Origin: Bugula neritina
Taxonomy: Eukaryota > Animalia > Bryozoa
DNA: 64,000 nt
Assembly (NCBI GenBank): GCA_964035545.1
Contig: OZ037769.1
Coordinates: 15,344,633-15,408,632, forward strand
Reading direction: 5' to 3'
Part shown: positions 25,301 through 63,946 of the stretch, piece after piece
How positions within the stretch are numbered: the stretch's first letter is position 1
Layout of the letters: each line of letters opens with the position of its first letter
Program-made: the position numbers and the translations under genes
The notes under the pieces: model-generated
The model's database searches: none
What the model was told of the DNA's origin: nothing
What the model saw: only the letters and a program-made list of their open reading frames with translations

Positions 25301-28300
25301 CATGATTGTAGTAACACAAGTAAAATCCTCATAATGTTTGACTGCTCCTAATTTCTAGACAGCTGTCCATGACCACACTTGGAGGGCTACTCCAAAGTCT
25401 AGCAGCTTCCCCAAGCTAGAAAAGCACCACAACATCCTGTCCACCAAGCTCACAGAAGCTGCGTACGACAGCGTTTCTGGCAAGACCACCAAGAATGGAG
25501 TCACTCTGGACATGTGCATTCAATCAGGTCAGTTTTATAGAGAGCAGCCGTTGTCTAGGGGTTAGAGCGCTGGTTTAGTAAACATGAAAGTCATCGATTC
25601 AATACCCATTACAGGCTATTAGTGATGTTAGGATACATATAAAACATAAGTTCTTAGTTTGCTTCAAAAACCTTTCCTTATTAGGGGTCTTTTACAGGAA
25701 TAGTAACTATAAACTTGCGTGAGTGAATTTAGTTCTATACGCAGTTCTCAAAATGGAAAAACTAAACCAAGAGACAGGAATTTTATATAAGACCTAATAA
25801 AGAAGGGCGAGGCATATTTGTAGCTCATGTTTATTTGCATGCAGGTTGTGACAACATGGGTGAAGAGGGCAAGGTAGACGCTGGTATCTTAGCCGGTGAT
25901 GAAGAATCTTATACTGAGTTCGCCGACATCTTTGATCCAATCATCTCGGAGCTGCACAGTGAATACGCAAAGGTATACATTGCATCGAGCATTTGTGACT
26001 TGTATAGCAATGAAAGAATAGAGATTGTTTATAATTTCTTTATCAAGTGTTGGTATCAGATTTAATGCTAGTAGCAAGGTATTAGTGCTGGTAGATTATA
26101 CAATTTATCGATATGTATTTTTCAATTATAGGGCACTCACCAAGAATATCCTCCTAATTAACAGCTACTAGTTATATTCAGCAGCACAACTCACATGCTA
26201 TTGACTAATTTTTGTCTTCGACGGTTTTAAACATTTGCCTACTCTGTACAGAATAATTCAACACGTAAAAATGTTGATTTTGCTAACTTTAAGTTTTTGG
26301 ATTTTCGTTTGAATTTCAGGCTCAAAATACGATAACTTTAGTTTGAGGGCAGATAACTCTAGTTTGAGGGCAGATAACTCTAGTTTAGGGGCAGATAACT
26401 TCCGCAGCCAAAGGCTTTGGGCTTCTAGTTATAGGTAGCATTGCTTTATTTTAGGGTGGCAAGCAGACCTGCGATATGGATGCCTCTAAACTCGCCAACT
26501 GTGAGCTCGATGGTGACTACGCAGTTGGGTGCAGAATCAGTGTCTCCAGAAACATCGCAGGGTTCAGACTGACGCCCTGTATAGACAGGTGTGAGAGGAG
26601 AATGGTTCAGAAGGCTATAGTAGACGCAGCCATGGCAATGGATAGCAAGGTATGGTGTCTTGCAGTATATTTATATAAAGCATTATATTACTCTGTTTTA
26701 TAACTATTATTAATACATTATTTGTTTATATTTCTATCTGCTTTCATATGCAATTAAATAAGGTTTAAGTTATATTCAGTCAACTGTATCTTCATTCAAC
26801 TTTATGCATTACTTTATTGTAATTATTATATAACATAATATGTTGCAATATTTGTGATATATTTGTAATATTTGCAATATTTTGTAATATAATATAATAT
26901 AATACGACACATTAAAATATATTGCAACATAATATAGGCTTCCATATATATACAAATGCTGCATGACTAAGCCTAGGGCCACACGGTGCGTATTTTCGCA
27001 TGCGAAAATTGAAATCACAAGTAGCAAAGGTGTCCACTGTGCGCGTTGAGAAAACGTTCGCACTTGCGTTGAAAATGCTGAGCGACAAGTGCGAATTGTC
27101 TCTGTCATCGTCACCTAATTGGCTGGTAGCTGTTCAGCGAGCCCAATTTCTTTATTTAGTGCTACATTCCAGCAAATTGCGTTCTATTGAAAGCGAGTGC
27201 GATTTAAAAATGAAAGCTTTATTTATCACGCATCACTGACGCTACAGTCGACACCTTTGCTACTTGTGATTTCAATTTTCGCATGCGAAAATACGCACCG
27301 TGTGGCCCAAGGCTAACTTTCAGAGGTTAAAGGTCAGTAAGAAAAGGCAACTCTGAATAGTAGTAATTATATTTATTAACTTTGTTCCATATTATATTAT
27401 ATTGTAATATATTTTAATGTGTTGTATTGTATTATATTATGTTATATTATATTATATTACAAAATATTGCATAATATTACAATGCATTATATTGTATCAT
27501 ATTATACTAAATTATATTATAATATATTATGTTATGTTATAGATTATTGTAATGTAGTTCACTCTATTCTAATATATTTATATACAATGTTATATAAATT
27601 AACATAGCAAAGTATGTGCATAGTAAAAGCTATATTCTATATTTTCTGCTATAAAAATGTAAATTTTGTTATTAATGGAAATTTTTATTTCAACTTTTAG
27701 AAAAAAAATTAGCGTGATATTTTTATATCAGCATTTTTATTTACTCTATTGCAAATAGCGCACTGCAGAAATTCAATGTAAGCTGAGATCTTACTATTAG
27801 TGCTTTTCTTGTAGGGCAAGTACACTACAGTACACGGTATGAGTGAAGAACAGAAGGCTCAGCCTATCATGTTTAGCAATATTGCTGACGTCTCTCTCAA
27901 ATGTGGCGGTGAGTAACTTTATCTACTCTACTCTACTTGTTGCTGATAATGTAAGCTTTCCATTTATAAGTCTGATTTTATCTCAACCATCTGGTGTCTC
28001 CAGGTGTGGACAGAGACTGGCCAGATGCGAGAGGAGTCTTCTGCTCTGGTGGAACCGACTTTGTCGTGTGGGTCAATGAAGAAGATCACTGTCACGCCTT
28101 TACGATGCAAGAGAGTGGAAACTTGAAGGCTGTAAGTATCTCCGTGAGGTCACTGGTCTTGTCCTTTTCTCAAACAGAATGTTATGTCTTTAGAGCACCA
28201 ATCCTATTAGCTCTTGTCAAAGATTGGTTGTGTAAAATAATTGCCCCCACTGGGATTCGAACCTGAGTCATCCGGCTTGCAAGCAGGCGCGTTAACCATT

Positions 28301-29784
28301 ACACCACCAAGACTCAACACTACAGTTTGAATAATTTCTTGGTAATGAATATTTACTCAGGTCTAATCTTTGTTACTCTGACTATATATTGTTAATATTC
28401 TGTAGGTTTTTGAAAAGTTCTGTGGCAATCTGCAAAAGCTCGAAGCTGGAATAAAGAAGAGTGGAAAGGGATTCATGCACAGTGACAAGCTAGGTTACAT
28501 CACTGCTAGCCCAGATAAACTCGGAACTTGTCTTAAAGTCGGGGTTCGAGCTAAATTACCCAAAGTATCTGCACATGACAAATTTGCCGATGTAAGTGTT
28601 TGCATAGCATTGGCAGCATTTTTGTAGTTTCGTATGACTTTTCTATAGCAGCTGGTAATTAGAACATTTTGATGTATTTCCTGTCTGTTTACTGCTCCCC
28701 AAGTGTAAGACACATAATACCGACTTTGTAATTTAATTGTTTATATAAAATTAATTGAAAATCTCATGAAAATGCCAATGCACTTGCTAACATAGGATGA
28801 AGCCCATGCTCAATTTCTTTAAAAGGATTCTATTGTGAGTTATTCAACTAACCAGTAGCTCTGCAGAGTCTTAGGCAAGTTTTTGGGTTTTAGATTACAT
28901 TGCGTTTTGTTTGAATGACTTTTGTACTGCCGCGTGAATTATTTTGGCCAAGTTTGTTCTGAACTTCATCAACTAAAATAGCTACACAACAAGATATGAC
29001 CATGACATATGAGATCACATGACATGATGTGACATGACATAACGTGATGTGATATGAAAAGTTCATCTACTGCTTGCAGAGTTAATTTTGGACTATTTTA
29101 CAGATTCTGGCAGCTCTGAGTCTAAACCTAGTAGCCAACAATGAAGGAGTCTGTGATGTAGCAAGCAAGAGCACCTTTGGCTGCTCAGAGGTAAAGTTCT
29201 TATAAAGTTCTTTTAATTAGGAATTTCTTTTAAAGTTATTTCTAACCTGAAAATAATACTTACCAAGACGCTCACACATACTATTTAGCTATCAGACAAA
29301 GAAGTACGACTACTGTAATCTATATTCTTGGTGCTTTTGTAACTGATTTCAATGGTTTCACATGAAAAAGCTTAATACAGCTTTAGCTTAGGATTGTGTC
29401 TGCATAACTTCGGTTCTATCATTTTCAAGTTGATCCGTATTCTGTAAACTTGTCACTTATTTCAAGTAGAGAATAGTCTATACAGCAATCTGATTAGATT
29501 TCATCTTCATGCAGGTTGAATTAGTTCAACACGTTGGAGATTGCATCAGTCATCTAATCAAGATGGAGAAAGCACTATCAGCCGGAGAGAGTGTAGATGA
29601 GCTGGCAGCGCAAGCTTTGTCTGGCGACGTCAAACCTAAAGAGGCTCCAAAAGAGGAGCCGAAAGAGGAAGCACCAGCAGCAGAAAAACCAGCCGACGAG
29701 GAACCAAAGGCAGAAGCAGCAGCTGAAAAACCAGCTGAGGAAGAGCCGAAGGCGGAGGGCAGTGAAGAGCCTAAAACAGAGTAA
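19306..29784 (+). CDS. PK1: two-domain phosphagen (ATP:guanido) kinase, creatine-kinase branch, with N-terminal MGCGGS acylation motif and acidic C-terminal tail, ~821 aa
   Basis: Exons: 19306-19375, 20488-20497, 22268-22425, 22966-23135, 23672-23791, 24098-24203, 24319-24446, 24580-24758, 24915-25102, 25192-25271, 25359-25527, 25845-25972, 26455-26649, 27815-27908, 28004-28131, 28406-28591, 29104-29190, 29515-29784. Total 2466 nt, all GT-AG, phases consistent. D1 motifs: [55 protein letters not shown]. Confidence 0.92.
20488..20497 (+). CDS. 10-nt microexon of PK1 (CTGATGGAAA)
   Basis: Context TTTTTTGTAG|CTGATGGAAA|GTAAGT. Converts the phase-1 end of exon 1 into the phase 2 required by the exon at 22268. 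Confidence 0.75.
23421..23490. repeat. Perfect 33-bp inverted repeat with a 4-nt loop (70-nt hairpin) in a PK1 intron
   Basis: TAACTTTCCATTATGTAACTTTTAGTCAGTGAG-TAAG-CTCACTGACTAAAAGTTACATAATGGAAAGTTA. Confidence 0.95.
25543..25616 (+). mobile_element. Degenerate tRNA-like SINE head
   Basis: A-box-like TTGTCTAGGGG and B-box-like GATTCAATACC at tRNA-like spacing; no intact cloverleaf. Confidence 0.35.
26332..26400. repeat. 21-bp tandem repeat (GATAACTCTAGTTTGAGGGCA), ~3.5 copies
   Basis: Directly visible. Confidence 0.85.
26971..27313. mobile_element. PIF/Harbinger-type MITE, ~343 bp, TAA target-site duplication
   Basis: TAA|GCCTAGGGCCACACGGTGCGTATTTTCGCATGCGAAAATTGAAATCACAAGTAGCAAAGGTGTC...GACACCTTTGCTACTTGTGATTTCAATTTTCGCATGCGAAAATACGCACCGTGTGGCCCAAGGC|TAA; TIRs over 60 bp and nearly perfect. 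Confidence 0.88.
28242..28313 (-). pseudogene. tRNA-derived SINE head or tRNA pseudogene
   Basis: Minus strand GTCTTGGTGGTGTAATGGTTAACGCGCCTGCTTGCAAGCCGGATGACTCAGGTTCGAATCCCAGTGGGGGCA. Clear A box (TGGTGTAATGG) and B box (GGTTCGAATCC), but imperfect acceptor and anticodon stems. Confidence 0.6.
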
Positions 29785-29965
29785 CTCTGACTATACAGGT
29801 TAGTAAATGTCCCGTGAGTGACTGTGACTATACAGGTTAGTAAGTGTTACTATGACTAACTGTGACTATACAGGTTAGTAAGTGTCACTGTGAGTCTAAC
29901 TGTGAGTAGCTCTGACTAGAAAAATAATTGCAACTGTTAGTAGCTGTGACTATGCAGGTTAGTAT
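29785..29965. repeat. Degenerate repeat (TGACTATACAGGTTAGTAA) after the PK1 stop, reiterating a probable 3'UTR splice donor
   Basis: Four CAG|GTTAGT copies; candidate acceptor TTTTATTTACAG ending at 30112 and AATAAA at 30142. Confidence 0.6.
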
Positions 29966-30269
29966 ACAGTGAGTACAACTGTGAGATAGACAGTATTTGG
30001 GTAAACAACTTCCTTTCAGTCATTTTAAAGTTTAAGTATGACATTATGAGTTGTCTACCCTACTTAGCACACTTGCACTGCATATTTGAGAGATATCGCA
30101 TTTTATTTACAGATTTCAAGATAAAAGAGATAAAAACATTTAATAAAGACTCCATTTCTCGGACCAAGTAGAACGCTGCTATGTTCTCTCACTTCTGCCG
30201 AGTAGAAGCGGATGTTTCGTTTTAGTTGTGTTTGTGAGTGCTGGTCAAATGTCATCTTCCATTTTGTTT

Positions 30270-30305
<36 letters not shown>

Positions 30306-32475: not shown

Positions 32476-32490
32476 CATATATAATATATA

Positions 32491-32576
<86 letters not shown>

Positions 32577-32577
32577 C

Positions 32578-32645
<68 letters not shown>
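32476..32645. repeat. (AT)n microsatellite
   Basis: Directly visible. Confidence 0.97.
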
Positions 32646-32649
<4 letters not shown>

Positions 32650-35600: not shown

Positions 35601-36621
35601 CAAGTCAATGTTCTACATAACAGATAACACCATTGCATATACATAACATCATATCAGAAGATGGCCTTTGCATTCTGTTGACCATTGGGTATCTAAAGTA
35701 ATTTATTATTGTAGTACATAAAACACAGCAAGTTTTGAAGTTAAAAAGAATTCCTTGCTTATACCTGCTTTTGGTAGTTTCAAAAAAGTCCATTTGTATT
35801 GGGTATATTAGTTTTTAGCACCTATTGTCAGAAGAGAAAGCACCTAAAATAATTGATTATTGGCTATTCCTATTGTAATAGATGAATAGCGCTGTTTAAA
35901 TGACTGTAGTGGTGGGATTAGATTTGAATATTTGCAGGGGAGGCTAAAGAGTTCCTCCCACAAAAGGTTTATAATTGTTTTTATTTTAATATTATTTAAT
36001 TATTTATTTAATAATATTATTATTATATATCTTCATTCCTAATTACTTAGGCACTTTCACAAACTAGCTCACTATTTGCAAGCTTTTTATATTTATATGG
36101 CTGTTAATAAAACATTAATTATAATCCATAAGAATTAAGATTATCATTGCAACTTTTAAGTTTTTTGACAATTAGTCAGTTATATTATATTAATTATATG
36201 TTTCTATTGATGCTATAAAGTGCTGTCTGTATATTATGTCCGTGTTACTAGAAACAAATACTACCAATATAATATTAGGAAGACTTCATTAGCATGCATA
36301 TGTCTGCAACGCATCAACAATAAATTTCTAAATCATGATTGCAGAAATGTTCCGTAACAGCGTCAAATTTTATTTTCTAGTGTTAAATGAAAAATTTTAT
36401 GACATGTTCTCTCTGCTGCACATTAATAAAAAAATATTTGTTAGGCTGGGCCCTTCTGGCTACGCTCCTGCGGGTTTTGATGATGAGTTTCGTGCACGCC
36501 GCAAATAATGCTAGCTCTGCACTCATGCTTGAATAGCTGCGGACGGACAACGCGTCTACATACAATTGGAGTTTTTCAGTACTTGACTGCTCTGTAATTC
36601 TAGATCAAATATCCAAGAATC

Positions 36622-39600
36622 ATGTCGGGAACTGCTGCGAGGTTAGTTCTTACTTTTTGTATTTAAATAAGAAGGTTTTCCTGCTACTTGATAATAATCT
36701 ACATTCATATGATAGTACATTTAAAACAAATGCTATTGCCCATTTCAATTTGTCTTTGAAAAAGCTAAAACTAAAAGTATAAGGCAAAAACAATCAGGAG
36801 CACAGTTACTGTTAGTGTTAGTCACTTAGTGAGTTATTGTTAGAATAAGTTATTGTTAGTGTGAGTATCAACGCAAAAACTATAAATAATAATATTTCAA
36901 TAATCATGACTAAATACTTAGAGTATAATCATAATGTAATTATATAATAATAATGATGAATAATATAAATATTAATACTAATACTAATAGTAATAGTAAT
37001 AAATTTACTTTTTAGGCTTACTAAATATCAGTCATACTTAATCTTATACTTATACTCGCATAATTATAGTAATCTTAGACTTAAAGAAATGTGTCAATTT
37101 CTGTATTAACATTAATCATTAATGTTTATATTGCTTAGTAAGTTGTAGTTGATATTATAATTGTTTTATTATGATCATCATCAAATTGAATTTGATATGC
37201 ATATTAATTATTAATAATATTCATTATGGTTATTATTGCACTTGAAGTTGATTAAATTTCAAATTTAAACTTGCTTAAACTTAAACTCGAACTGAGCTTG
37301 TAAACTAATATCCATAATTTAACTCACTTGAAGTTAATGATATTGATTATCGTAGTCATACTGATACTTGCTCTAAAACATTTGCCAAAGCCCAAGTTAA
37401 TACTGATAGTTTTGGTGATAGTAATAAAGCTAATTATTAATAATAATAATAATTATAGTAGTCACTATGACTATTACTATGAGCAATATTGATATTACTG
37501 GTACCACTATAACTATGAGTATATGTGTAACTATTTGATAATTAAAACTTAAAAGTCAAGCTGAAGCTGTAGGTCACCATAAACTAAATATAGTAGTAAT
37601 ATTAATTATTAGATAAGGAGTATTCATATTGTTAATACTCATGCTACTAGTTTTGCATTTAGTGGGTAAATTAAATGGAATATGCTTCTGTTGCTGCATT
37701 AACGAGTCAGTGCTGCATCCATTTCAAGGTTAATATTTGGATTTATTGGTTTAGTCAATGGTGCAATCATATCCATATTTATGCTAACAGAAGTTGTCAT
37801 GGTTAACTCATTCATAAATTGAGATTTAGCTTATCACATAACCATGTTGATATTAAATTTGATTCCATATACTTATTTAGACACAATATCAGCATGTGCT
37901 GATATTTACTGGTATTAAAATGATAATTTATGCGTTATCAAACCTAAAAGATGATTTGGATGATAATGACAATATTATAGTAATAGAAAGGATTATCATT
38001 ACTAGCATAAGTTGTAAGGATTCATTAGTGCAAGCTAGAATTATCATTGTGATGATAAGCACCAACACTAACTTCTATGAAAGTTAAAAGACCATAGGAT
38101 TAGTTAATATCAAATGCCATTGTAGTAAATGTAATGTTGTCATATTTGGTTATTTTATTTAAAAATACATTATATATATGTTTGTTTTTATTATGAACCT
38201 TCATTCATCTAACCTTACTCTAATCAGCTAGGCAGCTAAAAGCTTGATACTTATTTGAGTGACAATTGCTCAGGATGGCTAGTTTTTGCAATCCCTGTCT
38301 TGCATATTTATCATTTATTCATTTCTAAGATAGTGCAAGGCATAAATATTGTGATAAGATAAGAACCAACTTTTTAATACAACTCTGGGCATTTAGAATG
38401 TTTCCCTGGCTAACATTCTTACTAGTTTTAAAAAGTTGTCTTATGAAATGCTGGTACTCTGTAAAGCAGAAAAGTTGTATTTTAGAATAGTAATCTGATA
38501 AGACCATTTCCCACAATGCAATGAACCTTGAATACCATATTTTAAAATTTCATCGAAATAATCTTTTTCCTTATAAAATATGAGGTTGAATTTTAAAGAA
38601 AAGGTTTTTTGTTCCCATTATCTTTTTGCTTGCTAATTGTGGATCTTGTAGTTGTTCAGCTTTTAGTAGAAATGGCAAATAATATATCTACTTATAAATA
38701 GGCTCTATTTGTTTATATATTATGTGTTAAAATCCCAAATTGTTATAATTAGATTAATTGGCTAATTGTGCCACAAAGGTTAAGCTAATATTCTAGTTGG
38801 TCTATTAGGCTGCTTGTTGATTCCTATCAGATTAGCTGATATGGGCCAAAACATCATGTTTAATGATTTTGTCTGAATGCTTTGCAATTTTCAAAGTTCC
38901 TAAAACTTCTACAATATCAGGAGTTTGAAAATTGTACTTGTTATATTACATTTATTTGTGTTTAAAACTTTAGTTGAGGTGAAAGAATAGAAATTTAGAT
39001 GGTTTTGTTGAAATCTTCCAGTTGCAATGTGATGTTTTTGTTTAAATTTTTGTGATGTTTTTGTTTAAATTTTTGCGATCTTTCAGTTAAATCATGTAAT
39101 TTTGACCTCCAAGCTGGACTTTTCAAATTTAACTTCCTCCTTTTCTTCAATGGCCACACAGTGTTGAGGTAGGTGCAGTAATGGAGAAATTGAGAAAGGC
39201 CTGTGTTCTATAATATTAGAAATGGAGCATAAGAACTTATGTCCTCACAAAAATTTCAACCCGCTACCCAAACCAAAATCTAATAATAAAATTAAAACAC
39301 TTAGCCTGTCTCAATTTCTCCACTATTGCTCCTAAATGACAAATGATGGAACAGATTGTCACTGTTTACTCCAAAGGCGACATGCCGCACAAGTTGGCAC
39401 TGAGTGTGTTGGTTGTGTTGCAGCTTCGACAACTACCCCGACTTTGAGGGACACAAGCATCTGATTGGTAAACTGCTGACTCGAGAGCTCTACGACCAGC
39501 TCAAGGGCCTCAAGACTCACAGTGGCTGTACTCTCGACCGATGTATGCAAGGAGGGGTGGATAACTATGACTTCTCCGTCGGTGGGTTTCTCCTGTGCCC

Positions 39601-42600
39601 CCTCTGTATACACCCCACCTTTTGGCAGTTTGTGATGAAACAACTCACGACTAAACTATTTGTGTTGTAAAGCTGCCGTTTAGGAGCAGTAGTGGAGAAT
39701 TTGAGAAAGTCGAAGTTCTTTAATTTTATTGTCAAATTTTGGTTTGGGATGCAAATTGAAATTCTTGCAAGAACATATCTTCTTATGCTACATTTCTAAT
39801 CTGAAACACAGGCTTTTCTCAATTCCTCCATTACTGCACCTACATCAAAGCTGCTATTTCCATTATGAAAGTACAATCTAACGTATACTTGAAATAGATG
39901 CATGTCGCACTATGGCCGGAGTGTAGGCAGCATCTACAAGCTGTCATGTGATATTGTTCATGCTGGGCATTCATTACAATCATTAGCAGGACGCAATGTG
40001 CAGAGCATAAAGTCTACTTCAAAGGGCAGTTTGCTCTTTGCTTATTATAAACTTGTGAGACAGAAGTTTGCATTTAATACACACAAGTATTCAGACTATC
40101 TCCTAGTTTACCTGATGTTTACACAAAGTGTTAGCCTGCCTCTTCTCATCACTAAACACTGTATCATGCTCCGTGTATGCATGTAGTGCCCTGGGAATTG
40201 TGTTCCCCTAGAAGGGCAGTATATTGGTGGCCATGTTTGCAGGCTGTGCTATGGGAGACGAGGAGTCGTACACTCTCTTTGGGGACGTCATGTACAGTGT
40301 TATCGAGGGAAGACATGTTGGCTACAAGAGAACCGACATACATAAGAGTGACCTAGATCCAAGCAAGCTGATTGGTGGAGACCTTGACCCCAACTATGTC
40401 GTCTCGACTAGGGTATGTATAGCGGCAGCCACTTATGTCTGAGAGGCAGCAGCTTGTGGCAGCGTAGACTGGCAGCAGCTGCTGAGCTTAATAATCGTTA
40501 GTTGAAGCACTTGTCTGGTTGATTAGATACAACATGCCTTGTTGAGACTCTTATCTATCTCTGCGTCTCTCAACAACTGAATTTTCACGACTTAAATATG
40601 AAGCAAACTCAGCCTCTCTCTCAGTCTAACTGAACTTACAGAGATGTAGCGTCAGTTTTAGCTAGAGTTGTGTGATTTACAGTGTGAGCTGTGGGTTGTG
40701 TAGCTGATAGCATTGCCCGTGTTTTTATAGATCAGAACTGGTAGAAATGTGAGGGGGTACTCCTTGCCCCCGTACTGCACTCGATCTGAGAGACGAGATG
40801 TTGAGAGTATTCTGCTAGGAGCTTTGAGCAATCTCGATGGACCCCTTAAGGTGACAAAAACTTATTTTGTGTTTATCTTGACCTCGTATTCACTCTGCAA
40901 TTTGCTGGGTTACCACAAAAAAACCTTGAAATCTGAAGTAATAAAATAAAAAAAAAATTTCTCTAAAAATGTTGCCAGCTGTGGGTTTCACCACCACACA
41001 CGAGGTCGTATTGACTCAATAGTCGTTCTTCTGCAGGGTAAGTACTACTCGCTGGAGACTATGACTCTTGCTGATCAGGACCAGCTCATCGCAGACCACT
41101 TCCTGTTTGACAAGCCCATCCACGCTCACATGACTACTCAAGGTACGTTGCAGTATAACAGTAGTCACCTAGTAGTAATAGTCAGCTAGCTACTCTCTGT
41201 ACTTTAGTACAATGTTCAGTGTTCATGGCTCATCTCACACTACTGTTACGTAATCGATTGCTTTCTTCTTTAAATGACTGTTATATGAGCTGGCATGGCT
41301 ATGGTTTCAACTGTATATTCTAAAGTTTTTAACAGAAGGACTTTCCTGCATAGAGATGTAGATTTTATTTTCGAAACAGTAAGCTTTTCGATGTTATTTG
41401 TGTTGAAATGGCCACCTCAAATTTTCTGTGTAAATTGTTGATAATTTTAGAAGTTTTCATTTTATTCAATGCAGCATTCCAATCTCCCACAGAAAAGTTT
41501 ATTCAGTACAAACTTTTTCTAATTTCTGCTATCAGTTTAAACATTAAATGTTGAGCAAATATTACTTCTGCTGATATAACACTATCAGTTCTCTCTGTCG
41601 GCGTGATCAATTTGAGTCTTTGCGGCTGCAGGTATGGCACGTGATTGGCCAGATGCCAGAGGTATTTACCACAATGACGACAAGAACTTTCTGGTGTGGA
41701 TCAACGAAGAGGATCATAGCAGAATCATTTCTATGCAGAAAGGAGGGAACATGAAAGAGGTGAGTGTATAAACTCAGTTCTCAAGTACGACAACAACTCT
41801 ACTTATCTCAGCAACTGTAGAAATCTTATCAGTTTTACCTTCCCTGGGAGTTTGACACTAGCTGCGGTTTGCAAAAGCTGCTATGCCTACCTGGTGTTGA
41901 CTTTACTACCTTTACTGCTGAAATGTTCGATCAGAGAAGTTATCTCTATGGGTTAAGAAAGTCTTATCACTTCTTTTTCTCTCTGTTCAGGTGTTCACCA
42001 GGTTCTGTAAGGCTCTGCTGGAGGTTGAAAGGCTGATGGGCGAGCAGGGAGGGAATGAGTTCATGTTCAATGAGCACATCGGATACGTCCTCACCTGTCC
42101 CTCCAACCTGGGTACTGGCCTGAGGACCAGTGTCCACCTTAAGATCCCCAAACTGTCTGAACATCCCAAGTGAGTTCCGCAATGCTGCTCAGTTACCAGT
42201 GCTGTGTACTTTTCTGTATAGTAATAGTATAGTAGAAAGCATACTAATATATAATACACTATATAAACATCTCCTTTGTAATATCTGCACCATACTGTCC
42301 TGGTTTAACACTCATAGCTGTCTCACATACAGCCTCTAGTGTAAGGTGCAGTAGTTTTTCTTCTGCTTGAGCGACTAAAACTAGCAGTTGTTGGTGCGAG
42401 AGAGAGAACTGTTGGTGCACAGGCTAGAAGTTACAGTATAGTTGTATATATTGCTAGTTACAGCTCATACATGGCATTCGGTTGATTTCCTGTCAGGTTT
42501 GTCGAGATTTTGAAGAATTGTCGTCTGCAGAAGAGAGGAACTGGCGGTGAAGAAACGACCAGCACAGACGGTACATTTGATATCTCCAACTGGGACAGAG

Positions 42601-48600: not shown

Positions 48601-51183
48601 ACTCTTTGGTATATACTGTATTATATTATACTATATACTCTTTGGTATATACTGTATTATATTATACTATATACTCTTTGGTATATACTGTATTATATTA
48701 TACTATATACTCTTTGGTATATACTGTATTATATTATACTATATACTCTTTGGTATATACTGTATTATATTATACTATATACTCTTTGGTATATACTGTA
48801 TTATATTATACTATATACTCTTTGGTATATACTGTATTATATTATACTATATACTCTTTGGTATATATGGTATTATATTATACTATGTACTCTTTGGTAT
48901 ATACTGTATTATATTATACTATATACTCTTTGGTATATACTGTATTATATTATACTATATACTCTTTGGTATATACTGTATTATATTATACTATATACTC
49001 TTTGGTATATACTGTATTATATTATACTATATACTCTTTGGTATATACTGTATTATATTATACTATATACTCTTTGGTATATATGGTATTATATTATACT
49101 ATGTACTCTTTGGTATATACTGTATTATATTATACTATATACTCTTTGGTATATACTGTATTATATTATACTATATACTCTTTGGTATATACTGTATTAT
49201 ATTATACTATATACTCTTTGGTATATACTGTATTATATTATACTATATACTCTTTGGTATATACTGTATTATATTATACTATATACTCTTTGGTATATAT
49301 GGTATTATATTATACTATATACTCTTTGGTATATACTGTATTATATTATACTATATACTCTTTAGTCTACACTATGCACACTCTTTGTTTAAGCATGCAA
49401 TACTATAATATTTCTTCTGAACTGAACAGGTGTAGCCAGGGACTGGCCGGACGCAAGGGGGGTGTTTTATAACGAAGCTAAGGACTTCATAGTCTGGGCT
49501 AACGTAGAGGACCACGCCCAGGTGCACTCTGCTCAGTACGGGGCCGACATGCAGTCCGTAAGTCTCGTTCACATTCTGACAAACAGAAGCAGGTGGTTTC
49601 AAGTCAAAATATATGACTACGAGTTTTTTGTTTTAACAATTAATTTGTGTAATTTTTCTCTGCGACTAACCTGTGATGTAGCTGATTGTACGTATCTTTC
49701 CGATGGTAGGTATTTGATAAGCTGTGTGACGGAATGGGCAAGTTTGAAGCTGCCGTTAAAAAGGGAGGAAAAGAGTTTATGCGAAATGACCATCTCGGCT
49801 ACATCGTAACTCGCCCAGAGAAACTCGGTACTGCTTTGAAGGCCGGGGTTAGCCTCAGCATCCCTAAACTTGCGGCTCATCCTAAAGTAAACGAGGTGGG
49901 TTTAGGCTCTGTACACTGCATGGTAGTATTTATAGTATGTTCTGTATTGTGTAGCTATTATATAGCGCTGTGCTGATTTTATTATTTTATATAATGATTT
50001 GTTTATTTATTGTTGGTACTTTTATCTGTTACTGAATTAATTTGTCATATACCATTTACTTAAATTTTATTATTTTGCACCATATTAGCAATTATCATGT
50101 TGAATTGTCCTGTGTTTGTTGATAAAGAGTGTGGTCGTTTTTTGTACCCCATTGCGCGCTTAGATGTGTGGAATCTTTTCTTTGAAGCCAGTTTCAGCGT
50201 TAATTGTATTAAAGATATATCTATTCTGATCCTTAATGTACTTCTATAATTATTGTATAACTTTATACTAACTGTCCTGTTTTGTGAAGTTATCTCCCCA
50301 CTGTATAACTATACTGTGTTGTGAAGTTATCTCCCCACTGTATAACTATATACTAACTATACTGTGTTGTGAAGTTATCTCCCCACTGTATAACTATACT
50401 GTACTGTGTTGTGAAGTTATCTCCCCACTGTATAACTATACTGTGTTGTGAAGTTATCTCCCCACTGTATAACTATACTGTGTTGTGAAGTTATCTCCCC
50501 ACTGTATAACTATATACTAACTATACTGTGTTGTGAAGTTATCTCCCCACTGTATAACTATACTGTACTGTGTTGTGAAGTTGTCTCCCCACTGTATAAC
50601 TGTACTGTGTTGTGAAGTTATCTCCCCACTGTATAACTATACTGTGTTGTGAAATTATCTCCCCACTGTATAACTATACTGCGTTGTGAAGTTATCTCCA
50701 CACTGTATAACTATACTGCAATGTGTTGTCTACCTCCAGCTGATGAAGGCCATGAAACTAGAAGACACAAAGTCATGTGAAGAGGGCAGACTTTATGTCC
50801 ATAACGAGGAAACTCTCGGATCCTCGGAGGTAGGTTTACACTCTCCTGTTTCAAGTCATTCACTCAAGTTACTTACTCAATTACCTAAGTCACTTAAGTA
50901 CTCGAGTACTTACAGCCTCCCACACTATAGATATTGTTACTTACTGTAGGCCTCTCAGGTCCAGTGTCTGGTGGATGGTGTACAGAACTTGATCAAGATA
51001 GAGAAGGCTCTGGCAGCCGGGAAAGATGCCGGCAGCCTCATTTCTCAAGCCATGTCTGGCAGGTGAGTCATTCTGACATTTCTAGTAGTAGTACTACAAA
51101 TATTTAAAGGGGAAGACAACTGCCACAGCATCTCTTCACTCATATTCCTATCTCTTACTTATTTATGTTTCAGCAAACTCTAA
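36622..51183 (+). CDS. PK2: two-domain phosphagen kinase paralogue ending in -SKL (PTS1), ~759 aa
   Basis: Exons: 36622-36641, 39424-39581, 40243-40412, 40731-40850, 41037-41142, 41632-41759, 41991-42169, 42497-42684, 43871-43947, 45099-45270, 45745-45872, 46676-46876, 47873-47978, 49430-49557, 49710-49895, 50740-50829, 50950-51062, 51174-51183 (2280 nt). D1 exon sizes are identical to PK1 (158, 170, 120, 106, 128, 179, 188). The first exon (MSGTAA+AG|gttagt) is the least certain. Confidence 0.9.
39165..39338 (-). mobile_element. Family A element, copy 5 (inverted)
   Basis: TGAGGTAGGTGCAGTAATGGAGAAATTGAGAAA...TCTCAATTTCTCCACTATTGCTCCTAAATG. Confidence 0.75.
39679..39847 (+). mobile_element. 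Family A element, copy 6
   Basis: TTTAGGAGCAGTAGTGGAGAATTTGAGA...TCTCAATTCCTCCATTACTGCACCTACATCA. Confidence 0.75.
43937..44383. repeat. 23-27-bp tandem repeat (TCTCTGCAGATAGTAAGTCAC...) reiterating a PK2 exon end and donor, ~16 copies
   Basis: Starts inside the exon 43871-43947; each unit reads Yn-CAG|ATA|GTAAGT. Confidence 0.92.
45873..46003. repeat. 19-bp tandem repeat (GTACAGTGTGTAGTGTCTA), ~7 copies, starting at a splice donor
   Basis: Directly visible. Confidence 0.9.
47338..47784. mobile_element. MITE with 16-bp TIRs and TAA target-site duplication (PIF/Harbinger-like), ~447 bp
   Basis: TAA|AGTTGCGTTTATACCT...AGGTATAAACGCAACT|TAA; interior less AT-rich than its flanks. Confidence 0.8.
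47986..49363. repeat. 36-bp minisatellite (GTATATACTGTATTATATTATACTATATACTCTTTG), ~38 copies, filling a PK2 intron
   Basis: Directly visible; source of the spurious 503-aa and 324-aa ORFs. Confidence 0.97.
50275..50718. repeat. ~37-bp tandem repeat (ACTGTATAACTATACTGTGTTGTGAAGTTATCTCCCC), ~11 copies, ending just before a splice acceptor
   Basis: Directly visible. Confidence 0.92.
51174..51183 (+). CDS. Terminal coding mini-exon of PK2 completing Ser-Lys-Leu-stop
   Basis: ...TCT GGC AG|GTGAGT (donor 51063), long pyrimidine tract ...TTTCAG|C AAA CTC TAA; AATAAA at 51436-51441. Confidence 0.8.
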
Positions 51184-56500: not shown

Positions 56501-59500
56501 CTTATTTTGTTTTCCTTTTCGACAAATATAATGCAAACTATACATATTTGTGCTGATGCTGTTGCAAGAGTAACCCCCAAGTTTGTAATTATTTGGCTAC
56601 ACCTAATAGGTTAAAAATAGAAAGCTGTTAAGCACACAAATATATATCCACGTAATATAACCTTTAATATTCACTTTCATACCTGCAGCCAGAGGGTTTA
56701 AACAAACTCTTTTTTCTTTCACCACTTAGCCACAGCTACTAGTAGAATTCAAAATGTCCGGTAACAGGTTTGTACTTTAGATTATGTTTTATAGATTTTA
56801 GTATGCAATAAGTTTATGGGTTGCCTAATTGAATTTTATTTCGTTATAGCAAATATAATCATTTATATTAATATTACTTAAAATATTTAATAGAGTAAGA
56901 AAAAGTATTATAATACACCATTTAATTTAAAACATAGTATGGGTATTTATGTAAAAAAATTAAAAATTTTAAAAAAGTTACTAAAATTTGTAGCATTTTA
57001 ATGTAGAAATCACTATCAAAGCTGCACTTTCTATTATTCAATTACTGGCTGTTTAGACTTTCCCGTTATTTTTATGTTCCCCTCCAAGAGTTGACAACTG
57101 CTAGCTCAAACTACTTTATTAATACATAGCCATATGCATAAATGAGAGAGGATAACCCTTATTGGAATATAATCATTGTAATCATTTTAAAAACTGCGTT
57201 TTCTATGTAGCTGTGCTTAGAATATTTTCATTTCTCATTTATTGTAGAATTTAAACTGTGCTGCCAATTTAAAAGCACTATTTTGTTTGGATCACCAAAA
57301 CTAGGTGATCAAATATAGAGCTAGATAGTACAATCTAGAGCTAGGTGGTGCATTGCAAAGCTATAGGTAGTGCAATGCAAAGCTAGGTGGTACAATATAG
57401 CTATGCTTTGACTTTAGGAACAGAACCATGTAATGTAATTTTTATTAAGGTTGTAATTGGCTTTTTATGACTACTGTATAGCAGCAAACTAATAAATGTA
57501 CTCATAAAATCTAATGCAATGTTATATAACAAGTGCTTAGTTATTATATATTATATACCGAGCACATTACTGCCACGGCCTTGCCTTATAAGCTTAACAT
57601 TATTCAGAAATTATTATTATTCAACTATAACTCCTTTCATATCTTAGAATATTATGCACCCACACACTGCATAGCCTGTGGCCTCACTCACTAACTTACT
57701 GCATAGCCTGTAGTCTGCATAGCTTGTAATCTCACTTGTCAACTCATGTATTACATAACATTGTTTGAATTCAATAACCACTTTAACAACTGGTATTGTT
57801 ACCTCCTTATATACACCTTTTCACTTAGTATAAAGTCCCTGCATTTCATTGGTCAATGCCACACAATAGTTTCACCGGTAGACCAGAATTCTTTGCAAAC
57901 TTTACCGGCATCTTTGCTCAGTTGCACTCATTTGTTGACTGCTGCCTGGTGTGTAATTTGCTGACTCTGCATCTAAACCGCTGCTTCTAAATAATCACAA
58001 TGTCTTCAGGAGGGTATGTGTCCTACTATAATATCCTTCTAATACTTACCTTGTAACATGTTGTATATGTTATTAAGTAGACCTTGCGTATATCTTGTAT
58101 TATTTACTACATATAAAAATTATAAAGCAATTTGCAAACTTTTAGTTGTAAGATTTTTGGCAAAAGTTTTTACTATAACATTTTGGTACTGATGTGTTGG
58201 CTGTGCAAGAATTTAGTAAACACATTTAGCCTACTCTCTGGAATATTATGCTGCAAGTACACATGCACTTGGGTTCTTTGGTTATTTAACAGAACTGGAT
58301 AACATCTTGAATGGTCTATTAAGTGCAGCATATATGTTGTGGCTATCAAACCATCATATTATACTCAAAACATCAGGGCTTTAGGTCTTCCATCCACTTG
58401 TTCGTTATGTTCATATTAATATTTCTCTCCTAAACTATTAGGATAAAAATACTGGACTGAATATCTCATTATTTAAAATAAAATACTGTTTACTAAATTA
58501 TTTAATATATTTGAGGATAATGATGTAGGTGCAAACATTTCACCTTGTAGGCTTATGTGCAGCAAGCTCACACCATTGGCTAAAATATCCTTTATACCTG
58601 CTAGGGTGCGAGTTTATGCCTTGCTGCATCCCAGCTAATGTAGTGCAAGCAGTAGAAATAGAGAAACACAATGAAATTAACTCTGCAGTTATGTGCTCCA
58701 TAATAGTTAGGCTAGCATTTGCTAAGCTTATTCAAAGCTTGAAGGCTTGTTTATGTTCTTTTAGGAACAACAGACTTCGAATTAAATCAATTTATTGAAC
58801 CCAATCAATATTTAAAAAGCCTTAATGTTACATTTCAGTGAATACAGTACACCCAAACAATACACCAGCCTTAATGTCATTCACACTTGCAGTTTAGAAA
58901 ACTTAAATCTAAGTTATACTTTTTTTACATTAAATCTTCATGACTACATAGTTTTATCAATCACCCAGTATTTTACTCGAAACTCATTTACAGTATCAAA
59001 TTTGTCTATAGGTAAAAATGTGGAGAATAATATTTTTATTTCCACACAATGCTTATATTTTATGCTATCTAAGTAAAAATAAGTAAAAAGAAAATGTATT
59101 TTATAATGTTTTATATTTTTCTAACTAGCTATGATATATAGATATGTTAACAGAATAGTGCTCTTATATTCATTATAGCGCCTTTTAAGGGAAATGATTA
59201 AATTAATTAAATAAAATTCTGTCCAAAACTATGGAAAGCTGCACAAAATTACATTATATGTTTTTAATAACATAAAGCCTTCTGTATTATTACAATATAT
59301 AACAACTATTATTGACATAACATGTTGTTTGTTTCTCTGTAGTTTTGACCGCTACCCCGACATGGAGGGCCACACCCACTTTGTCTCCAAGAATCTCACT
59401 CCTGAGATTTACGACAAGCTGAAGGACTTGAAGACAAAGAGTGGATACACCATTGACAAGTGCATTCAGGGGGGCATTGACAACCCCAAATTCTCTGTTG

Positions 59501-62500
59501 GTGAGTGTTCGGGTTTTTGTTCCTATGTTTATACTTTTACCATATTATAATCTTTCAGTTCCGATATTCGTATTCCCCACTATCACATGTGTCAATTAAA
59601 AGTGTCACATGTGTCAATTAAAAGTGTCACATGTGTCAATTAAAAGTGTCACATGTGTTCTTTTGCCAAAGTGTCACTTTTGTCATGCTTGTCAAAATGT
59701 CACTTTTGTCATGCTTGTCAAAGTGTCACTTTTGTTATGTTTGTCAAATGTGTCATATTGATCAATGTGACACACATGTCAAGTATGTTAAGATGGCACA
59801 TGTGTCATGTTTGTTAAAGTGGCACATGTGACATGTATGTTAAGGTGACACATGTCAAGTATGTTAAGGTGACACATGGGATATATTTGTTAGAGTGGCA
59901 AATGTGACATGTCTGTTAAGGTGACATATGTGCCATTTGTGTTAAGGTGACATGTGTGACATGTATGTTAAGGTGCTACTGGTGGAGATGAAGAGACTTA
60001 CACTCTCTTTGGTGATCTGATGTACGGCATTATCGAGGGAAGACATGTTGGTTTCAAGAGAACCGACATACATAAGAGTGACATGGATTCCAGCAAGCTG
60101 ATTGGTGGAGACCTTGACCCCAACTATGTCCTCTCTAGCAGAGTGAGTTCTTATATAGAGATCATTGAAATGAAATGGCATTCTTTTTGTCTCAACTGAA
60201 TGAGAATCATGGAGTTATCTGTTCATTGTAAAACTTGCCGGCTTATAGATTAGGATGTAAAATAGTAAGATGAAAAAATTAATTTAACGTAACTGAATCG
60301 GTATTAGGTACAAGTTGATTCAACACAATAGATTTCGGTTATTGTGTAGATTTATCAGTACAAACGAGATCTTTGTTTGTAGGTTCGAACCGGAAGAAGT
60401 ATTCGAGGATATTCTCTTTCTCCATTCATCACTCGGGCCGAAAGACGAGATGTCCAGGATATCCTTCTTAAGGCTCTGAGCAATCTGGAAGGACCTTTGA
60501 AGGTGAGAAGATAACTCTAATCTACAAGCAAGTTTTACAGTTAGTTATTCTGCCATTATTTTACACATGCATAATTTTCCAGGGCAAATTTTACTCCCTG
60601 GAGACAATGACCCCAAAGGATCAGCAACAACTTATTGATGACCACTTCCTGTTTGAGAAACCAACTGATACTTTTATGACGGACACAGGTGAGTTAGGAA
60701 CTTTTAATTGTTCAAGCCACACCACTTAATGCTGGGTCAACAATTGTAAGCACGATTACAATTATCTTCAGGTATGGCACGTGACTGGCCAGACGCCAGA
60801 GGTATTTACCACAATGACGACAAGAACTTTCTGGTGTGGATCAATGAAGAGGATCATAGCAGAATCATTTCTATGCAGAAAGGAGGAAACATCAAACAGG
60901 TGAATGGGACAGTTGGAGCAATAAGAATTACTCTTTTGTAAATATTTTAAAGGTTTTTATAGTGAATTTCCATGTGCAAAAATTAGCTTTATGTTGTCTT
61001 TAGGTCTTTGAAAGATTCTGTGCTGGAATCAACCAAGTTGAGAAGCTGATGGCTGAGCAGGGAGGAAATGAGTTCATGTTCAACGAGCATATCGGATACG
61101 TCCTGACCTGTCCCTCCAACCTGGGTACTGGACTCAGAGGTGGAGTTCATGTTAAGATCCCTAAACTGTCTGAACATCCCAAGTGAGTGATTGTGGAATG
61201 ATTGACTCTTGAGTTAATTTAAGTAATATAGCGAAAGCACACCTCATTCCAGATCAACTACACAAATTCATTGTCATTCTCATCTTTTGAAAATGTTGTA
61301 AACCTCTACTGTCAGGTTTGATGAGATTTTGAAGAACTGTCGTCTGCAGAAGAGAGGAACTGGTGGTGAGACAACTACCAGCACAGATGGTACATTTGAT
61401 ATCTCCAACTGGGACAGAGTTGGTAAAACTGAAGTAGAACTTGTACAGCTTGTTATTGACGGTGTGGAACTTCTTATCAAGATGGAGAAGAGACTGGAAA
61501 AAGGTAAGAGAAGCCATATTAAAACGCTATGGTTCACTGAGTTGATCAAAGTGATTCTGAATTTTGTTAAGAATTTACTTGTTATATATTCTATATTTAT
61601 TATTACAGGGGAGAGCATTGATGACATTCTTCCAGGACCTGATGGCGCATGCCCTCGTCCAAAGGCTCCTGGAAAAGCGCTAGATATAGTATGTACAGAG
61701 TCATGTTCATTCTAATCACTATTATATCATCTGTTATATACACTTCGTTTGGAGAAAACAACTTCTACTGTTCCTTTGGTATATCTAAATTACAGGCTAC
61801 AATAGCAAACAATATCATAGATTGCTATTTTTGTTGAATCTTTACAATAAAGGTGTTTTAGTCTTATTAACGTAGTTGATCATTCTGTATTAATGGATGC
61901 TTTATACGGACAACTGTAGAAAGCAATCCATGATTACAAATGGCGAGCAACTCCAAAAGCTAGCAACTTCCCTAAGCTACACAAACACAACAACCTCTTG
62001 GCAAAAGTTCTAACAGAGGAACTTTACAATGACCTCAAAGGCAAGGAGACAAAAGGCGGAGTAACTCTAGATGACTGTATTCAGACAGGTGAGTGTAAAA
62101 CCCATCCCCTCTCCTTCTAACTTATGTATGCAACGTGTGCTTTAACTATATGATACGGTGTGTCATATTGAGTGAGAGTCAGTCAAGTTAAGTCACAATG
62201 AGTCAAACTAAGTCAAAGTAAACCATAGTCAGTCACATTAAGTCAAAGTAAGTCACAATGAGTCAAATTAAGTCAAAGTAAACCATAGTCAGTCAAAATA
62301 AGTCCTGGCAAAACACAGGGAATCAAACTGATGCAAACTGAATCATATTATTACACTTCTGTAGGACACAAAACAAATCTGGTAAACAAAATATGAATCT
62401 ATAATTTAAAAAATGTAGCCTCAAATCTAAATCTTTACTTTCAGGCGTAGACAATTTAGGAGAAGCTGGGGCAGAGCCAGTGGGAGTAACAGCCGGAGAT

Positions 62501-63946
62501 GAGGAGTGTTTCAGCATGCTGTCTGCACTCTTTGACCCCGTAATTGCTGCCGCTGGTGGCAAGGTAGGTTTTAGCAGCAGTTTAGCTGTTCAGAGGCATT
62601 TACCAGGCTTTAACATGTAAGATAATTGAACTGTGGGCATTGTAATGATTTATTATATTTGAGCTTTTTACCAGCTCTTACTTCCAACAATTCTGTCACT
62701 ATGTAACTCATACAAACTTGCTTCTATCAACTCATGGATCAATCTTGTTTCTGCTGCATTAGGCCGGCAGCCATGTCAGTAGCTTAGACGGCAGCAAACT
62801 AGGCAGCACCGACTTTGACAAAGATCTAGTGGGCGATTGTCAAATCAGCGCTGGAAGGAATATCCGAGGTTTCCGTCTCTCACCATCCATTGACCGCGCG
62901 GAGAGACGCAATGTTGAGAAGATTGTGTCTGATGCTGCTGCCACTCTGGACGGCTCTCTCAAGGTCAGCTGATCACATTGTGTCTGTCACAAATACGACT
63001 AGCAAAGTGGGCACAACTCCTCAGTGTGTAATACTTGAACCTTTTGTCATATTATAGTGGTGCATTATTTTGGACATTGGCTTGTCAGATGATCGTTTTA
63101 GCTGGAGTTTAATGTAATATAGAGTTTGTTGATATTTTAGTAGGTCACACTGAAACATCATATATGTAAATGTATAAAGACATGTATTTTTAATCAACCT
63201 GTAATACGTAATCTTAGTCAGGAAAGTCTATAAATAAAGTATTTTAAAGAGTTTAACCGAAAACCCTCTGCTTACAGGGCAAATACCAGTCTTTGAAGAA
63301 CATGGGTGATGCTGATAAGAATAGACCAATCATGTTCCAGAAAATCTCCTGCCCTCATTTGCTTTCTGCAGGTTAGTTGAGTGTTTGGAAGTAGCCTATG
63401 GGGCGTTATAAGAAAACTGCAATATGGCTTTTTAATGCCGAAGGTCTCATTTTTAAATTAGCGTAACTCTATTTTTAATAAAATTAATTCAACAACTCAT
63501 TTAAAAGAGCTTTTTTAGCTTTAACTTAGAATTATTGAGTTCTCTTATTATGAAAAATCAGCAACTGAATAAATTAGCAAGTGCAACTGTATGCTATCAA
63601 CTTTTATTACCTTCACATCATTATACACGTTTATATAATATTTTGGTTATTGCACAAAATTGTCCTTGCTTGGCTGACATTTTATTGTTATATACACAAT
63701 GTCATCCACAATGTTTTACACAATGCCCTACACAACGTCCTAAGCATGACTATAACATAATTGAACGCAAACCCCATCATTAGCTGATACAATGACTGCT
63801 CCATTGTTACTATTTCTCAAACAGAAGTACGCAGAGACTGGCCTGATGCACGAGGTGCCTTCACCAACGACAGCAGCGACTTCGCTGTCTGGGCTAATGA
63901 GGTGGACCATGCTCGAGTGGTTGCCAGGGGACAAAGTCTCTCAGCT
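53591..63946 (+). CDS. PK3: third two-domain phosphagen kinase paralogue, 3'-truncated by the window end
   Basis: Candidate first exons 53591-53604, 56754-56767 or 58000-58013. Then 59343-59500, 59973-60142, 60383-60502, 60583-60688, 60772-60899, 61004-61182, 61316-61503, 61609-61688, 61920-62088, 62445-62563, 62763-62963, 63278-63371, 63825-63946. Same intron positions and phases as PK1 and PK2. Confidence 0.9.
53697..53822 (-). mobile_element. Family A element, copy 7 (inverted, internally deleted)
   Basis: TGAGGTGGGTGCAGTGAAGAAAAAATAGAGAAAG...TTAGAAATGT...AAAGAACTTGGGCTA...CCTAAATG. Confidence 0.6.
59583..59975. repeat. Degenerate, partly inverted repeat (TGTCACATGTGTCA / TATGTTAAGGTGACA) running into a PK3 splice acceptor
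   Basis: Directly visible; the last TATGTTAAG|GT unit is the acceptor required by the frame and exon size (59972). Confidence 0.8.
62176..62305. repeat. Degenerate ~10-bp-period repeat (AGTCAAAGTA-like)
   Basis: Directly visible. Confidence 0.75.

Follow-up and report, generated by a model that had tools for sequence, protein, structure and literature searches.

A conserved, predicted non-catalytic second domain in three tandem phosphagen kinase genes of the bryozoan Bugula neritina

Introduction

Phosphagen kinases are a textbook enzyme family, and those with several domains have to date been regarded as repeated functional enzymes. Does this description fit three tandem genes of the bryozoan Bugula neritina, in which the second domain departs from the first at the residues used for catalysis? 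The genes (PK1, PK2 and PK3) are encoded on the + strand of a 64,000-nucleotide stretch of contig OZ037769.1 (assembly GCA_964035545.1, positions 15,344,633 to 15,408,632; here termed the window). Self-comparison of the open segments of this strand reveals two kinase-like units in each gene, an N-terminal D1 and a C-terminal D2. An earlier reading of the DNA (the original prediction) held that D2 is a conserved pseudokinase, which retains the dimer interface of creatine kinase (CK) and serves D1 as an inactive partner. Each gene is considered likely to encode an active D1 that is joined by some 27 flexible linker residues to a dead D2, which is maintained by selection and would serve as an inactive partner or scaffold.

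Catalytic residues of D1 and D2

The membership of D2 in the phosphagen-kinase fold is far above chance. In searches of Pfam, PDB and protein collections, which were run exon by exon, the PK1 D2 exons score 30 and 35.9 bits against PF02807 (cut-off 25.7) and 35.7 and 40.3 bits against PF00217 (cut-off 22.4), and D2 exons match solved CK, AK, GK, LK and TK chains. Joined sequences were used for alignment, for the tree and for the ratio of non-synonymous to synonymous substitution (dN/dS). Residues are given in muscle CK numbering, which is taken from ungapped exon matches to rabbit 2crk_A (381 residues, as human 1i0e_A) and human 1i0e_A. Residues 15-61 of the PK1 D2 Arg-motif exon correspond to 118-164 of 2crk_A, while residues 1-41 of the PK1 D2 RDWPDARG/NEED exon, 1-61 of the PK1 D2 Cys exon and 2-40 of the specificity-loop exon correspond to 207-247, 249-309 and 62-100 of 1i0e_A, respectively.

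Seven core catalytic residues were scored (Arg130, Arg132, Glu232, Arg236, Cys283, Arg292 and Arg320). All seven are present in the D1 domains of PK1, PK2 and PK3, whereas D2 keeps two in PK1, one in PK2 and one in PK3 (4/21 in total). In the order PK1, PK2 and PK3, position 130 of D2 is Arg, Trp and Gln, position 232 is Glu, Glu and Val, position 236 is His, Gln and Arg, and position 292 is Lys, Lys and Gln, with Ser at position 132 throughout. Position 283, which is Cys in all three D1 domains, is Ser, Arg and Arg in D2. The 320 loop is without Arg320 in D2 and is shorter than in D1 by 7, 6 and 7 residues. Of the phosphate-binding arginines (130, 132, 236, 292 and 320), PK1 D2 keeps Arg130, PK3 D2 keeps Arg236 and PK2 D2 keeps none, and His296 and Arg341 are substituted in all three copies. 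The residues that remain include Arg135 and Asp233 in every D2, His191 in PK2 D2 and the intact NEEDH box of PK1 D2, which becomes NVEDH in PK2 (Glu231 to Val) and NEVDH in PK3 (Glu232 to Val).

These substitutions map to short motifs on the + strand. In PK1 D2, the motifs are CRISVSR (26530..26550; Arg130 and Arg135 kept, Arg132 replaced by Ser), NEEDHCH (28075..28095; Glu231, Glu232 and Asp233 kept, Arg236 replaced by His), the Cys motif (28502..28537; Cys283 to Ser, Ser285 to Asp, Asn286 to Lys and Arg292 to Lys, with His296 to Arg just after) and NLVANNE (29125..29145), which replaces the QKRGTGGE...D loop. The equivalents in PK2 D2 are CWISVSR (46751), NVEDHAQ (49501), the Cys motif (49806) and the EDTKSCEE loop (50761), and those of PK3 D2 are CQISAGR (62838) and NEVDHAR (63896). 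The Cys motif of D1 is at 24679 in PK1, 42090 in PK2 and 61103 in PK3. The Cys-motif region of PK3 D2 lies beyond the window and reads GPRLDCLGTSLQ (Cys283 to Arg, Arg292 to Gln); the loop that follows is shortened as in PK1. Every D1 and D2 motif quoted in the original prediction was located in the window, on the + strand and at the expected position. Its claims of an altered Cys motif and of a replaced loop, 6-7 residues shorter in D2, are borne out in all three genes, including the PK3 exons fetched from outside the window. With 4/21 core residues kept and the strong purifying selection described below, the pseudokinase reading stands; the assignment of D2 as a pseudo-enzyme domain is well supported, and the domain is predicted to be without residual catalytic activity.

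The D2 paralogues are 46-53% identical to one another, compared to 79-87% for D1. There are 17 positions (Ser132 among them) that are invariant within D1 and within D2 yet differ between the two, and a Cys at position 129 and an N-terminal WRATPK motif are invariant across the D2 copies.

Selection on D2

D2 was compared with contigs of Bugula neritina samples (JGI metagenomes and Logan), which were reached via a 75-residue protein fragment (P0004). Contigs L004 and L006 cover PK1 from D1 to D2 exon 7, L009 covers all of PK2 and L011 covers PK3 to D2 exon 7. The contigs run collinear with the window, at ~87% identity in the introns, which places their source in a close relative that may be a sibling species within the B. 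neritina complex.

D2 is under strong purifying selection. By the Nei-Gojobori method, dN/dS between the window and the relative is 0.067 for PK1 D2 (against L004 and L006), 0.042 for PK2 D2 (eight main exons, against L009) and 0.094 for PK3 D2 (seven exons, against L011), with values of 0.022 (L004), 0.010 (L009) and 0.017 (L011) for the respective D1 domains. The pooled changes are 120.5 synonymous and 33.5 non-synonymous in D2 (P ~1e-48 against neutrality) and 112 synonymous and 7 non-synonymous in D1. The 22 D2 exons compared (seven of PK1, eight of PK2 and seven of PK3) are all equal in length, keep every AG/GT splice site and have no stops. The PK1 introns differ by 11.2 indel events per kilobase between window and relative; at the intron rate, 34.5 indels would be expected over the 3081 nucleotides of D2 exons, compared to none observed (P ~1e-15). 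The dN/dS check that the original prediction proposed for D2, run here domain-wise, thus gives values well below 1 (0.04-0.09) and contradicts neutrality, and the related claim that D2 is not decaying agrees with the absence of indels and stops and the retained splice sites. The least constrained part of PK1 D2 is the loop region, in which 4 of 10 amino-acid differences from the relative fall.

Among the D2 paralogues, dN is 0.39-0.47 and synonymous sites are saturated (pS 0.78-0.84), compared to dN of 0.08-0.14 and dS of 0.7-1.0 among those of D1. The lower dS of D1 (e.g., at exons 24318-24449, 41631-41762 and 60771-60902) relative to the saturated D2 of the same genes suggests gene conversion among the D1 exons only.

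Dimer interface

In the original prediction, Arg147, Arg151, Asp209 and Trp210 of muscle CK are given as dimer-cohesion residues. A 2016 paper (PMC4754747) names the equivalent residues Arg148, Arg209 and Asp210 among the key charged interface residues of human cytosolic CK, which are Glu19, Asp55, Asp62, Arg148, Lys156, Arg209 and Asp210. The partners across the dimer (PMC4754747, Table S5) are Asp54, Glu19 and Gln58 for Arg148, Asp54, Asp55 and Asp62 for Arg209, and Gln58 and Asp62 for Asp210; Lys156 pairs with residues 17-18 (Glu17/Asp18 in brain-type CK and Glu18 in the muscle type).

The original prediction that D2 keeps the dimer interface holds, at the level of sequence, for five of these seven residues (Asp62, Arg148, Lys156, Arg209 and Asp210), which are present in three of three D2 copies together with the partners Asp54 and Gln58, but not for Glu19, which is found in no D2, or for Asp55, which is kept in PK3 D2 only. 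The RxxRR and RDWPDARG motifs that it listed as retained were both located in all three D2 copies. The former reads DRCERR in PK1 D2 (26584..26601; Arg148, Arg151 and Arg152 kept, with Lys156 after, within VQK), DRAGRR in PK2 D2 (46805) and DRAERR in PK3 D2 (62892). The latter, present in six of six domains, is found in D2 at 28012..28035 in PK1 (Arg209, Asp210 and Trp211 kept), 49438 in PK2 and 63833 in PK3. The RDWPDARG codons differ between D1 and D2 (16-19 of 24 nucleotides identical), which argues that the motif is kept in D2 by selection. Recent gene conversion from D1, considered as a source of the motif in D2, is ruled out by the same codon differences. Overall, D2 retains 16/21 interface cells versus 4/21 catalytic cells (Fisher P = 5e-4), a descriptive contrast given that the three paralogues are not independent.

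The D1 domains carry Asp54, Arg148, Arg209, Asp210 and Asp18 in three of three genes and Gln58 and Asp62 in two of three, while Lys156 is absent from all. Lys156 is thus found only in D2, and Asp18, its partner in human brain-type CK, is found in every D1; in the geometry of the canonical dimer the two would lie opposite each other. By this distribution, a D1:D2 pairing fits better than D1:D1. The reciprocal Lys156/Asp18 pair is missing on both sides in PK1 and PK3. The asymmetry is a hint, compatible with a fixed D1:D2 pair, and a role of D2 as a built-in dimer partner is plausible from the residues retained.

Gene structure

Exon models are based on splice-site and phase compatibility and on homology between the three copies. 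Each gene is composed of D1 (seven exons, counted from the YP(N/D) motif), a linker exon of 77-80 nucleotides (26-27 residues) and D2 (eight exons), with an additional 10-nucleotide exon in PK2 D2. All junctions are GT-AG and compatible in phase, and the predicted joined frames are open from D1 through the linker to D2 in three of three genes, as the original prediction had it for the frames and splice sites of D2. The genomic model of D1, linker and D2, in which one polypeptide is predicted, has neither a break nor a phase conflict, and the relative conserves it. The region to which the pseudokinase was originally assigned extends from 25359, the acceptor of the first PK1 D2 exon, to 63946, the donor of PK3 D2 exon 5.

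The active-type D1 of PK1 (22266..25102) is modelled from exons 22266-22425 (the first modelled exon, with an approximate 5' limit), 22966-23135, 23672-23791, 24098-24203, 24319-24446, 24580-24758 and 24915-25102. An open frame that reads MGCGGS... is noted near 19306, upstream of PK1; it includes a possible N-terminal acylation motif and is a candidate first coding exon. The PK1 linker exon (25192..25271) encodes 27 Pro/Gly/Glu-rich residues in frame between D1 and D2, is 96% identical in the relative and is flanked by introns of just 89 and 87 nucleotides. An independent D2 gene is unlikely given the length of these introns and the absence of a Met near the start of D2. The dead D2 of PK1 (25359..29781) is modelled from exons 25359-25527, 25845-25972, 26455-26649, 27815-27908, 28004-28131, 28406-28591, 29104-29190 and 29515-29781, the last of which includes the stop.

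The D1 of PK2 (39428..42684) is encoded by exons 39428-39581 (5' limit approximate), 40243-40412, 40731-40850, 41037-41142, 41632-41759, 41991-42169 and 42497-42684, followed by the linker exon (43871..43947), which is supported by comparison with the relative. The dead D2 of PK2 (45099..51183) has exons 45099-45270, 45745-45872, 46676-46876, 47873-47978, 49430-49557, 49710-49895, 50740-50829, 50959-51062 and 51174-51183. The last of these, 10 nucleotides in length, is identical in the relative (L009:10776-10785), as is its acceptor tract. The intron before it is diverged in the relative, with a microsatellite gained. Several PK2 introns are rich in repeats, and two of them start with tandem copies of their own donor region (43937-44384 and 45873-46002). 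The first includes ~18 copies of a 24/27-nucleotide unit, which contain the last linker-exon bases and GTAAGT, and the second ~7 copies of a 19-nucleotide unit that begins exactly at the donor GTACAG. A 36-nucleotide unit repeated ~38 times at 97% identity (47986-49363) makes up most of the D2 intron between exons 47873-47978 and 49430-49557, and a 37/164-nucleotide repeat (50269-50718) is just upstream of the acceptor at 50740.

The D1 of PK3 (59347..61503) is encoded by exons 59347-59500 (5' limit approximate), 59973-60142, 60383-60502, 60583-60688, 60772-60899, 61004-61182 and 61316-61503. The PK3 linker exon (61609..61688), similarly supported by the relative, precedes the in-window part of the dead D2 (61920..63946), with exons 61920-62088, 62445-62563, 62763-62963, 63278-63371 and 63825-63946. 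The remaining exons are located beyond the window on the same contig (fetched as L002) at L002:1284-1469, L002:1933-2019 and L002:2835 onward, with the stop after ...SGKVKV. The C-terminal tails differ among the genes: that of PK1 is long and Pro/Glu/Ala/Lys-rich, that of PK2 ends in -SKL encoded by the 10-nucleotide exon, and that of PK3 is short. Some D1 exons are 98% identical in protein sequence among the paralogues.

Origin of D1 and D2

In the tree, the three D2 domains group as a single clade and the three D1 domains as a second (100% support for both). All three D2 domains have in common Ser132, the shortened loop and the absence of Cys283, Arg292, His296 and Arg341, which, together with their single clade, indicates that catalytic function was lost once, before the gene triplication. 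Beyond these clades, D1, D2, other animal CKs and a further CK-like gene of the genome (the C4 gene; C4:20585927-20587248, - strand, which reads NERDH and TSPADLGT but keeps the arginines) fall together in a polytomy.

D1 and D2 have just three of seven intron positions in common, and D2 has an extra intron at ...SE|VE..., a position at which the C4 gene also appears to have an intron, as judged from tblastn segment ends. The N-terminal and Arg-motif exons of D2 match mitochondrial-type CKs better than cytosolic CKs, while D1 exons match cytosolic CK and the arginine kinase of Apostichopus better. The few shared intron positions and the differing best solved matches argue against D1 and D2 being a recent tandem copy of one domain; a fusion of two CK-lineage genes is possible, given the intron positions and the ranking of PDB matches. 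The specificity loop is as long in D2 as in CK, but ~4 residues shorter in D1.

A HMMER search of 1.84 billion representatives, based on a profile built from the Arg-motif exons of the three D2 domains, detected no full-length D2-type protein, only the 75-residue P0004 of the B. neritina samples. When two D2 exons were used in word searches, each matched a single fragment, again from these samples. A related-locus search of metagenome contigs found no D2 locus, and the protein and metagenome-contig searches turned up no D2 orthologue outside the B. neritina group.

Comparison with known systems

Contiguous multi-domain phosphagen kinases include the two-domain arginine kinases of clams and the three-domain flagellar creatine kinases. 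In the multi-domain enzymes described, the repeated domains keep their catalytic residues, whereas the D2 of Bugula has lost them; for the two-domain enzyme of Calyptogena, two active domains are reported in the title of a study cited in PMC6429109. The Anthopleura japonicus arginine kinase (4RF6) and the Schistosoma taurocyamine kinase (4WO8) likewise have two PF02807+PF00217 units in one frame. Both are top solved matches of several D2 exons, a rank that reflects the alignment of both of their domains. In the animal-type multi-domain proteins among the best 150 HMMER matches (P0003, P0006, P0008 and P0013), every domain keeps more than four core residues. Contiguous phosphagen kinases of two and three domains are well known. 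No report of a catalytically dead phosphagen-kinase domain was found in the literature searched, which spans 8.1 million papers, and the D2 of Bugula would be the first clear pseudo-enzyme domain found for the family.

A dimeric, CK-lineage arginine kinase from Apostichopus (Stichopus) japonicus (3JU5) ranks first among the solved matches to the N-terminal exon of D1. The putative A. japonicus arginine kinase P0027 has a shortened specificity loop (GVDNHDFHLG), as does D1 (with PK2 D1 compared). The A. japonicus arginine kinase is single-domain, unlike the Bugula genes, and the comparison with it concerns D1 rather than D2. The literature also mentions an 'arginine kinase' of Bugula neritina (Zhang et al. 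2018, as cited in PMC6429109). From the phosphagen kinase repertoire of the genome, this enzyme is most likely the product of a D1-bearing gene, and D1 is probably the published arginine kinase.

Outside the family, the JH1 and JH2 domains of JAK pair an active domain with a catalytically impaired copy. The D1/D2 domains of receptor tyrosine phosphatases (PMC3172300) are a tandem of active and inactive domains. As in Bugula, an active domain is joined in both systems to a conserved impaired copy that is thought to regulate or scaffold; the folds and chemistry are unrelated, and the likeness is one of design only. Degenerate phosphagen kinase-like arrays are found in protist proteins of 1300-2100 residues with three or four units (e.g., P0001, P0002, P0005, P0007, P0011, P0012 and P0014), which originate from Mallomonas, Polykrikos and metagenome or transcriptome sources and in some cases carry an N-terminal PH domain. 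Like D2, these units have most core catalytic residues replaced, several with Ser at 132, as far as residue calls in such distant sequences, which depend on the alignment, can be read. Unlike in Bugula, all units of the arrays are degenerate, and their clade is distinct from the animal CK group, in which D1 and D2 fall.

Proposed explanation and alternatives

The explanation considered likely is that each gene would encode one polypeptide with an active CK-lineage D1, a flexible linker of ~27 residues and a complete second fold, D2. The latter would be incapable of phosphoryl transfer, as the reactive Cys, His296, the Arg320 loop and four or all five of the phosphate-binding arginines are gone. 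Catalytic loss would have preceded the gene triplication, and purifying selection would since have maintained D2 in a non-catalytic capacity. Most likely, D2 would occupy the CK-type dimerisation surface and so provide D1 with an inactive partner or scaffold that is built in; each molecule would then amount to a pseudo-dimer that has a single active site and targeting tails of its own. A single fused transcript and the packing of D1 against D2 are both predicted from the genomic sequence. A more specific form of this explanation is possible but is held only tentatively. In this form, D2 would be indispensable, taking the place of the second subunit within the same chain and converting a dimeric enzyme into a single-chain pseudo-dimer with one active site. 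Three isoforms (with an acylated N-terminus, a peroxisomal -SKL or neither) could thereby have evolved that form no mixed dimers, and the origin may have been a fusion of a cytosolic-type and a mitochondrial-type gene of the CK lineage rather than duplication of one domain.

Several points weigh against the likely explanation. In PK1 and PK2, a transcript that retains the intron behind the last D1 exon would reach a stop within a few codons and yield D1 alone, and D1-only isoforms may exist. The HMMER profile search of 1.84 billion representatives found no full-length D1-D2 protein from any transcriptome. D2 evolves ~4.5 times faster than D1 at non-synonymous sites (Fisher P = 1.5e-4), and the contrast of interface and catalytic residues treats three related paralogues as independent. 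In addition, most of the retained interface residues (RDWPDARG, the ERR motif, Asp54 and Asp62) are conserved across CK-lineage enzymes generally and may be kept for fold stability.

Some of the same evidence could be read in other ways. That D2 is a conserved non-catalytic module with a role other than partner of the D1 in its own chain (in D2:D2 contacts, in binding another protein such as the single mitochondrial-type CK-like protein of the genome, or in tail presentation) is rather unlikely, though a number of features accord with it. Both interface halves needed for a D2:D2 homodimer are kept (Asp54/Gln58/Asp62 and Arg148/Arg209/Asp210), a flexible linker of 27 residues imposes no intramolecular packing, the D2 exons with nearest matches in mitochondrial-type CKs resemble enzymes that oligomerise, and the three C-termini differ, with the -SKL of PK2 conserved in the relative. 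The charge pattern favours D1 as the partner instead: Lys156 of D2 and Asp18 of D1 are complementary in three of three genes, whereas for D2:D2 only PK2 has Asp18.

A D2 with a diverged ligand-binding or catalytic function, e.g., nucleotide sensing or use of another substrate, is improbable. Purifying selection, the D2-specific invariant residues (Ser132, the Cys at 129 and WRATPK), the whole NEED box of PK1 D2 and the His191 of PK2 D2 would be expected of such a domain, but the D2 copies keep just 4/21 of the core catalytic cells, Arg135 and Asp233 alone among core residues persist in all three and the closing loop is shortened. Moreover, residues 130, 236 and 283 vary among the D2 paralogues, as would be expected of an abandoned rather than a rebuilt site. 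It is scarcely credible that D2 is a decaying remnant of a domain duplication or an artefact of the gene models. The low identity of the D2 paralogues relative to D1 and the variable loop region are what decay would leave, but the low dN/dS, the lack of indels and stops against a background of intron indels, the retained splice sites and the D2 frames that are still open despite saturated synonymous sites between paralogues all contradict it. The ~13% intron divergence excludes that the contigs of the relative are sequence of the same individual with errors.

Significance

A PF00217 scan of the whole 216-Mb assembly detects only PK1, PK2, PK3 and the C4 gene. The D1 domains are apparently the only canonical phosphagen kinase sites of the animal, which would place the D1-D2 fusion at the center of its energy buffering. 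The presence of a non-catalytic D2 that is conserved nearly as tightly as the active D1 raises the question of what the second subunit of a CK-type dimer adds beyond another active site, be it stability, cooperativity or localisation, and the three paralogues provide three natural replicates with different targeting tails. The degenerate protist arrays suggest that non-catalytic uses of the fold may be wider than recognised. If true, the reading of the Bugula proteins as pseudo-dimers would make D2 the first described pseudo-phosphagen kinase.

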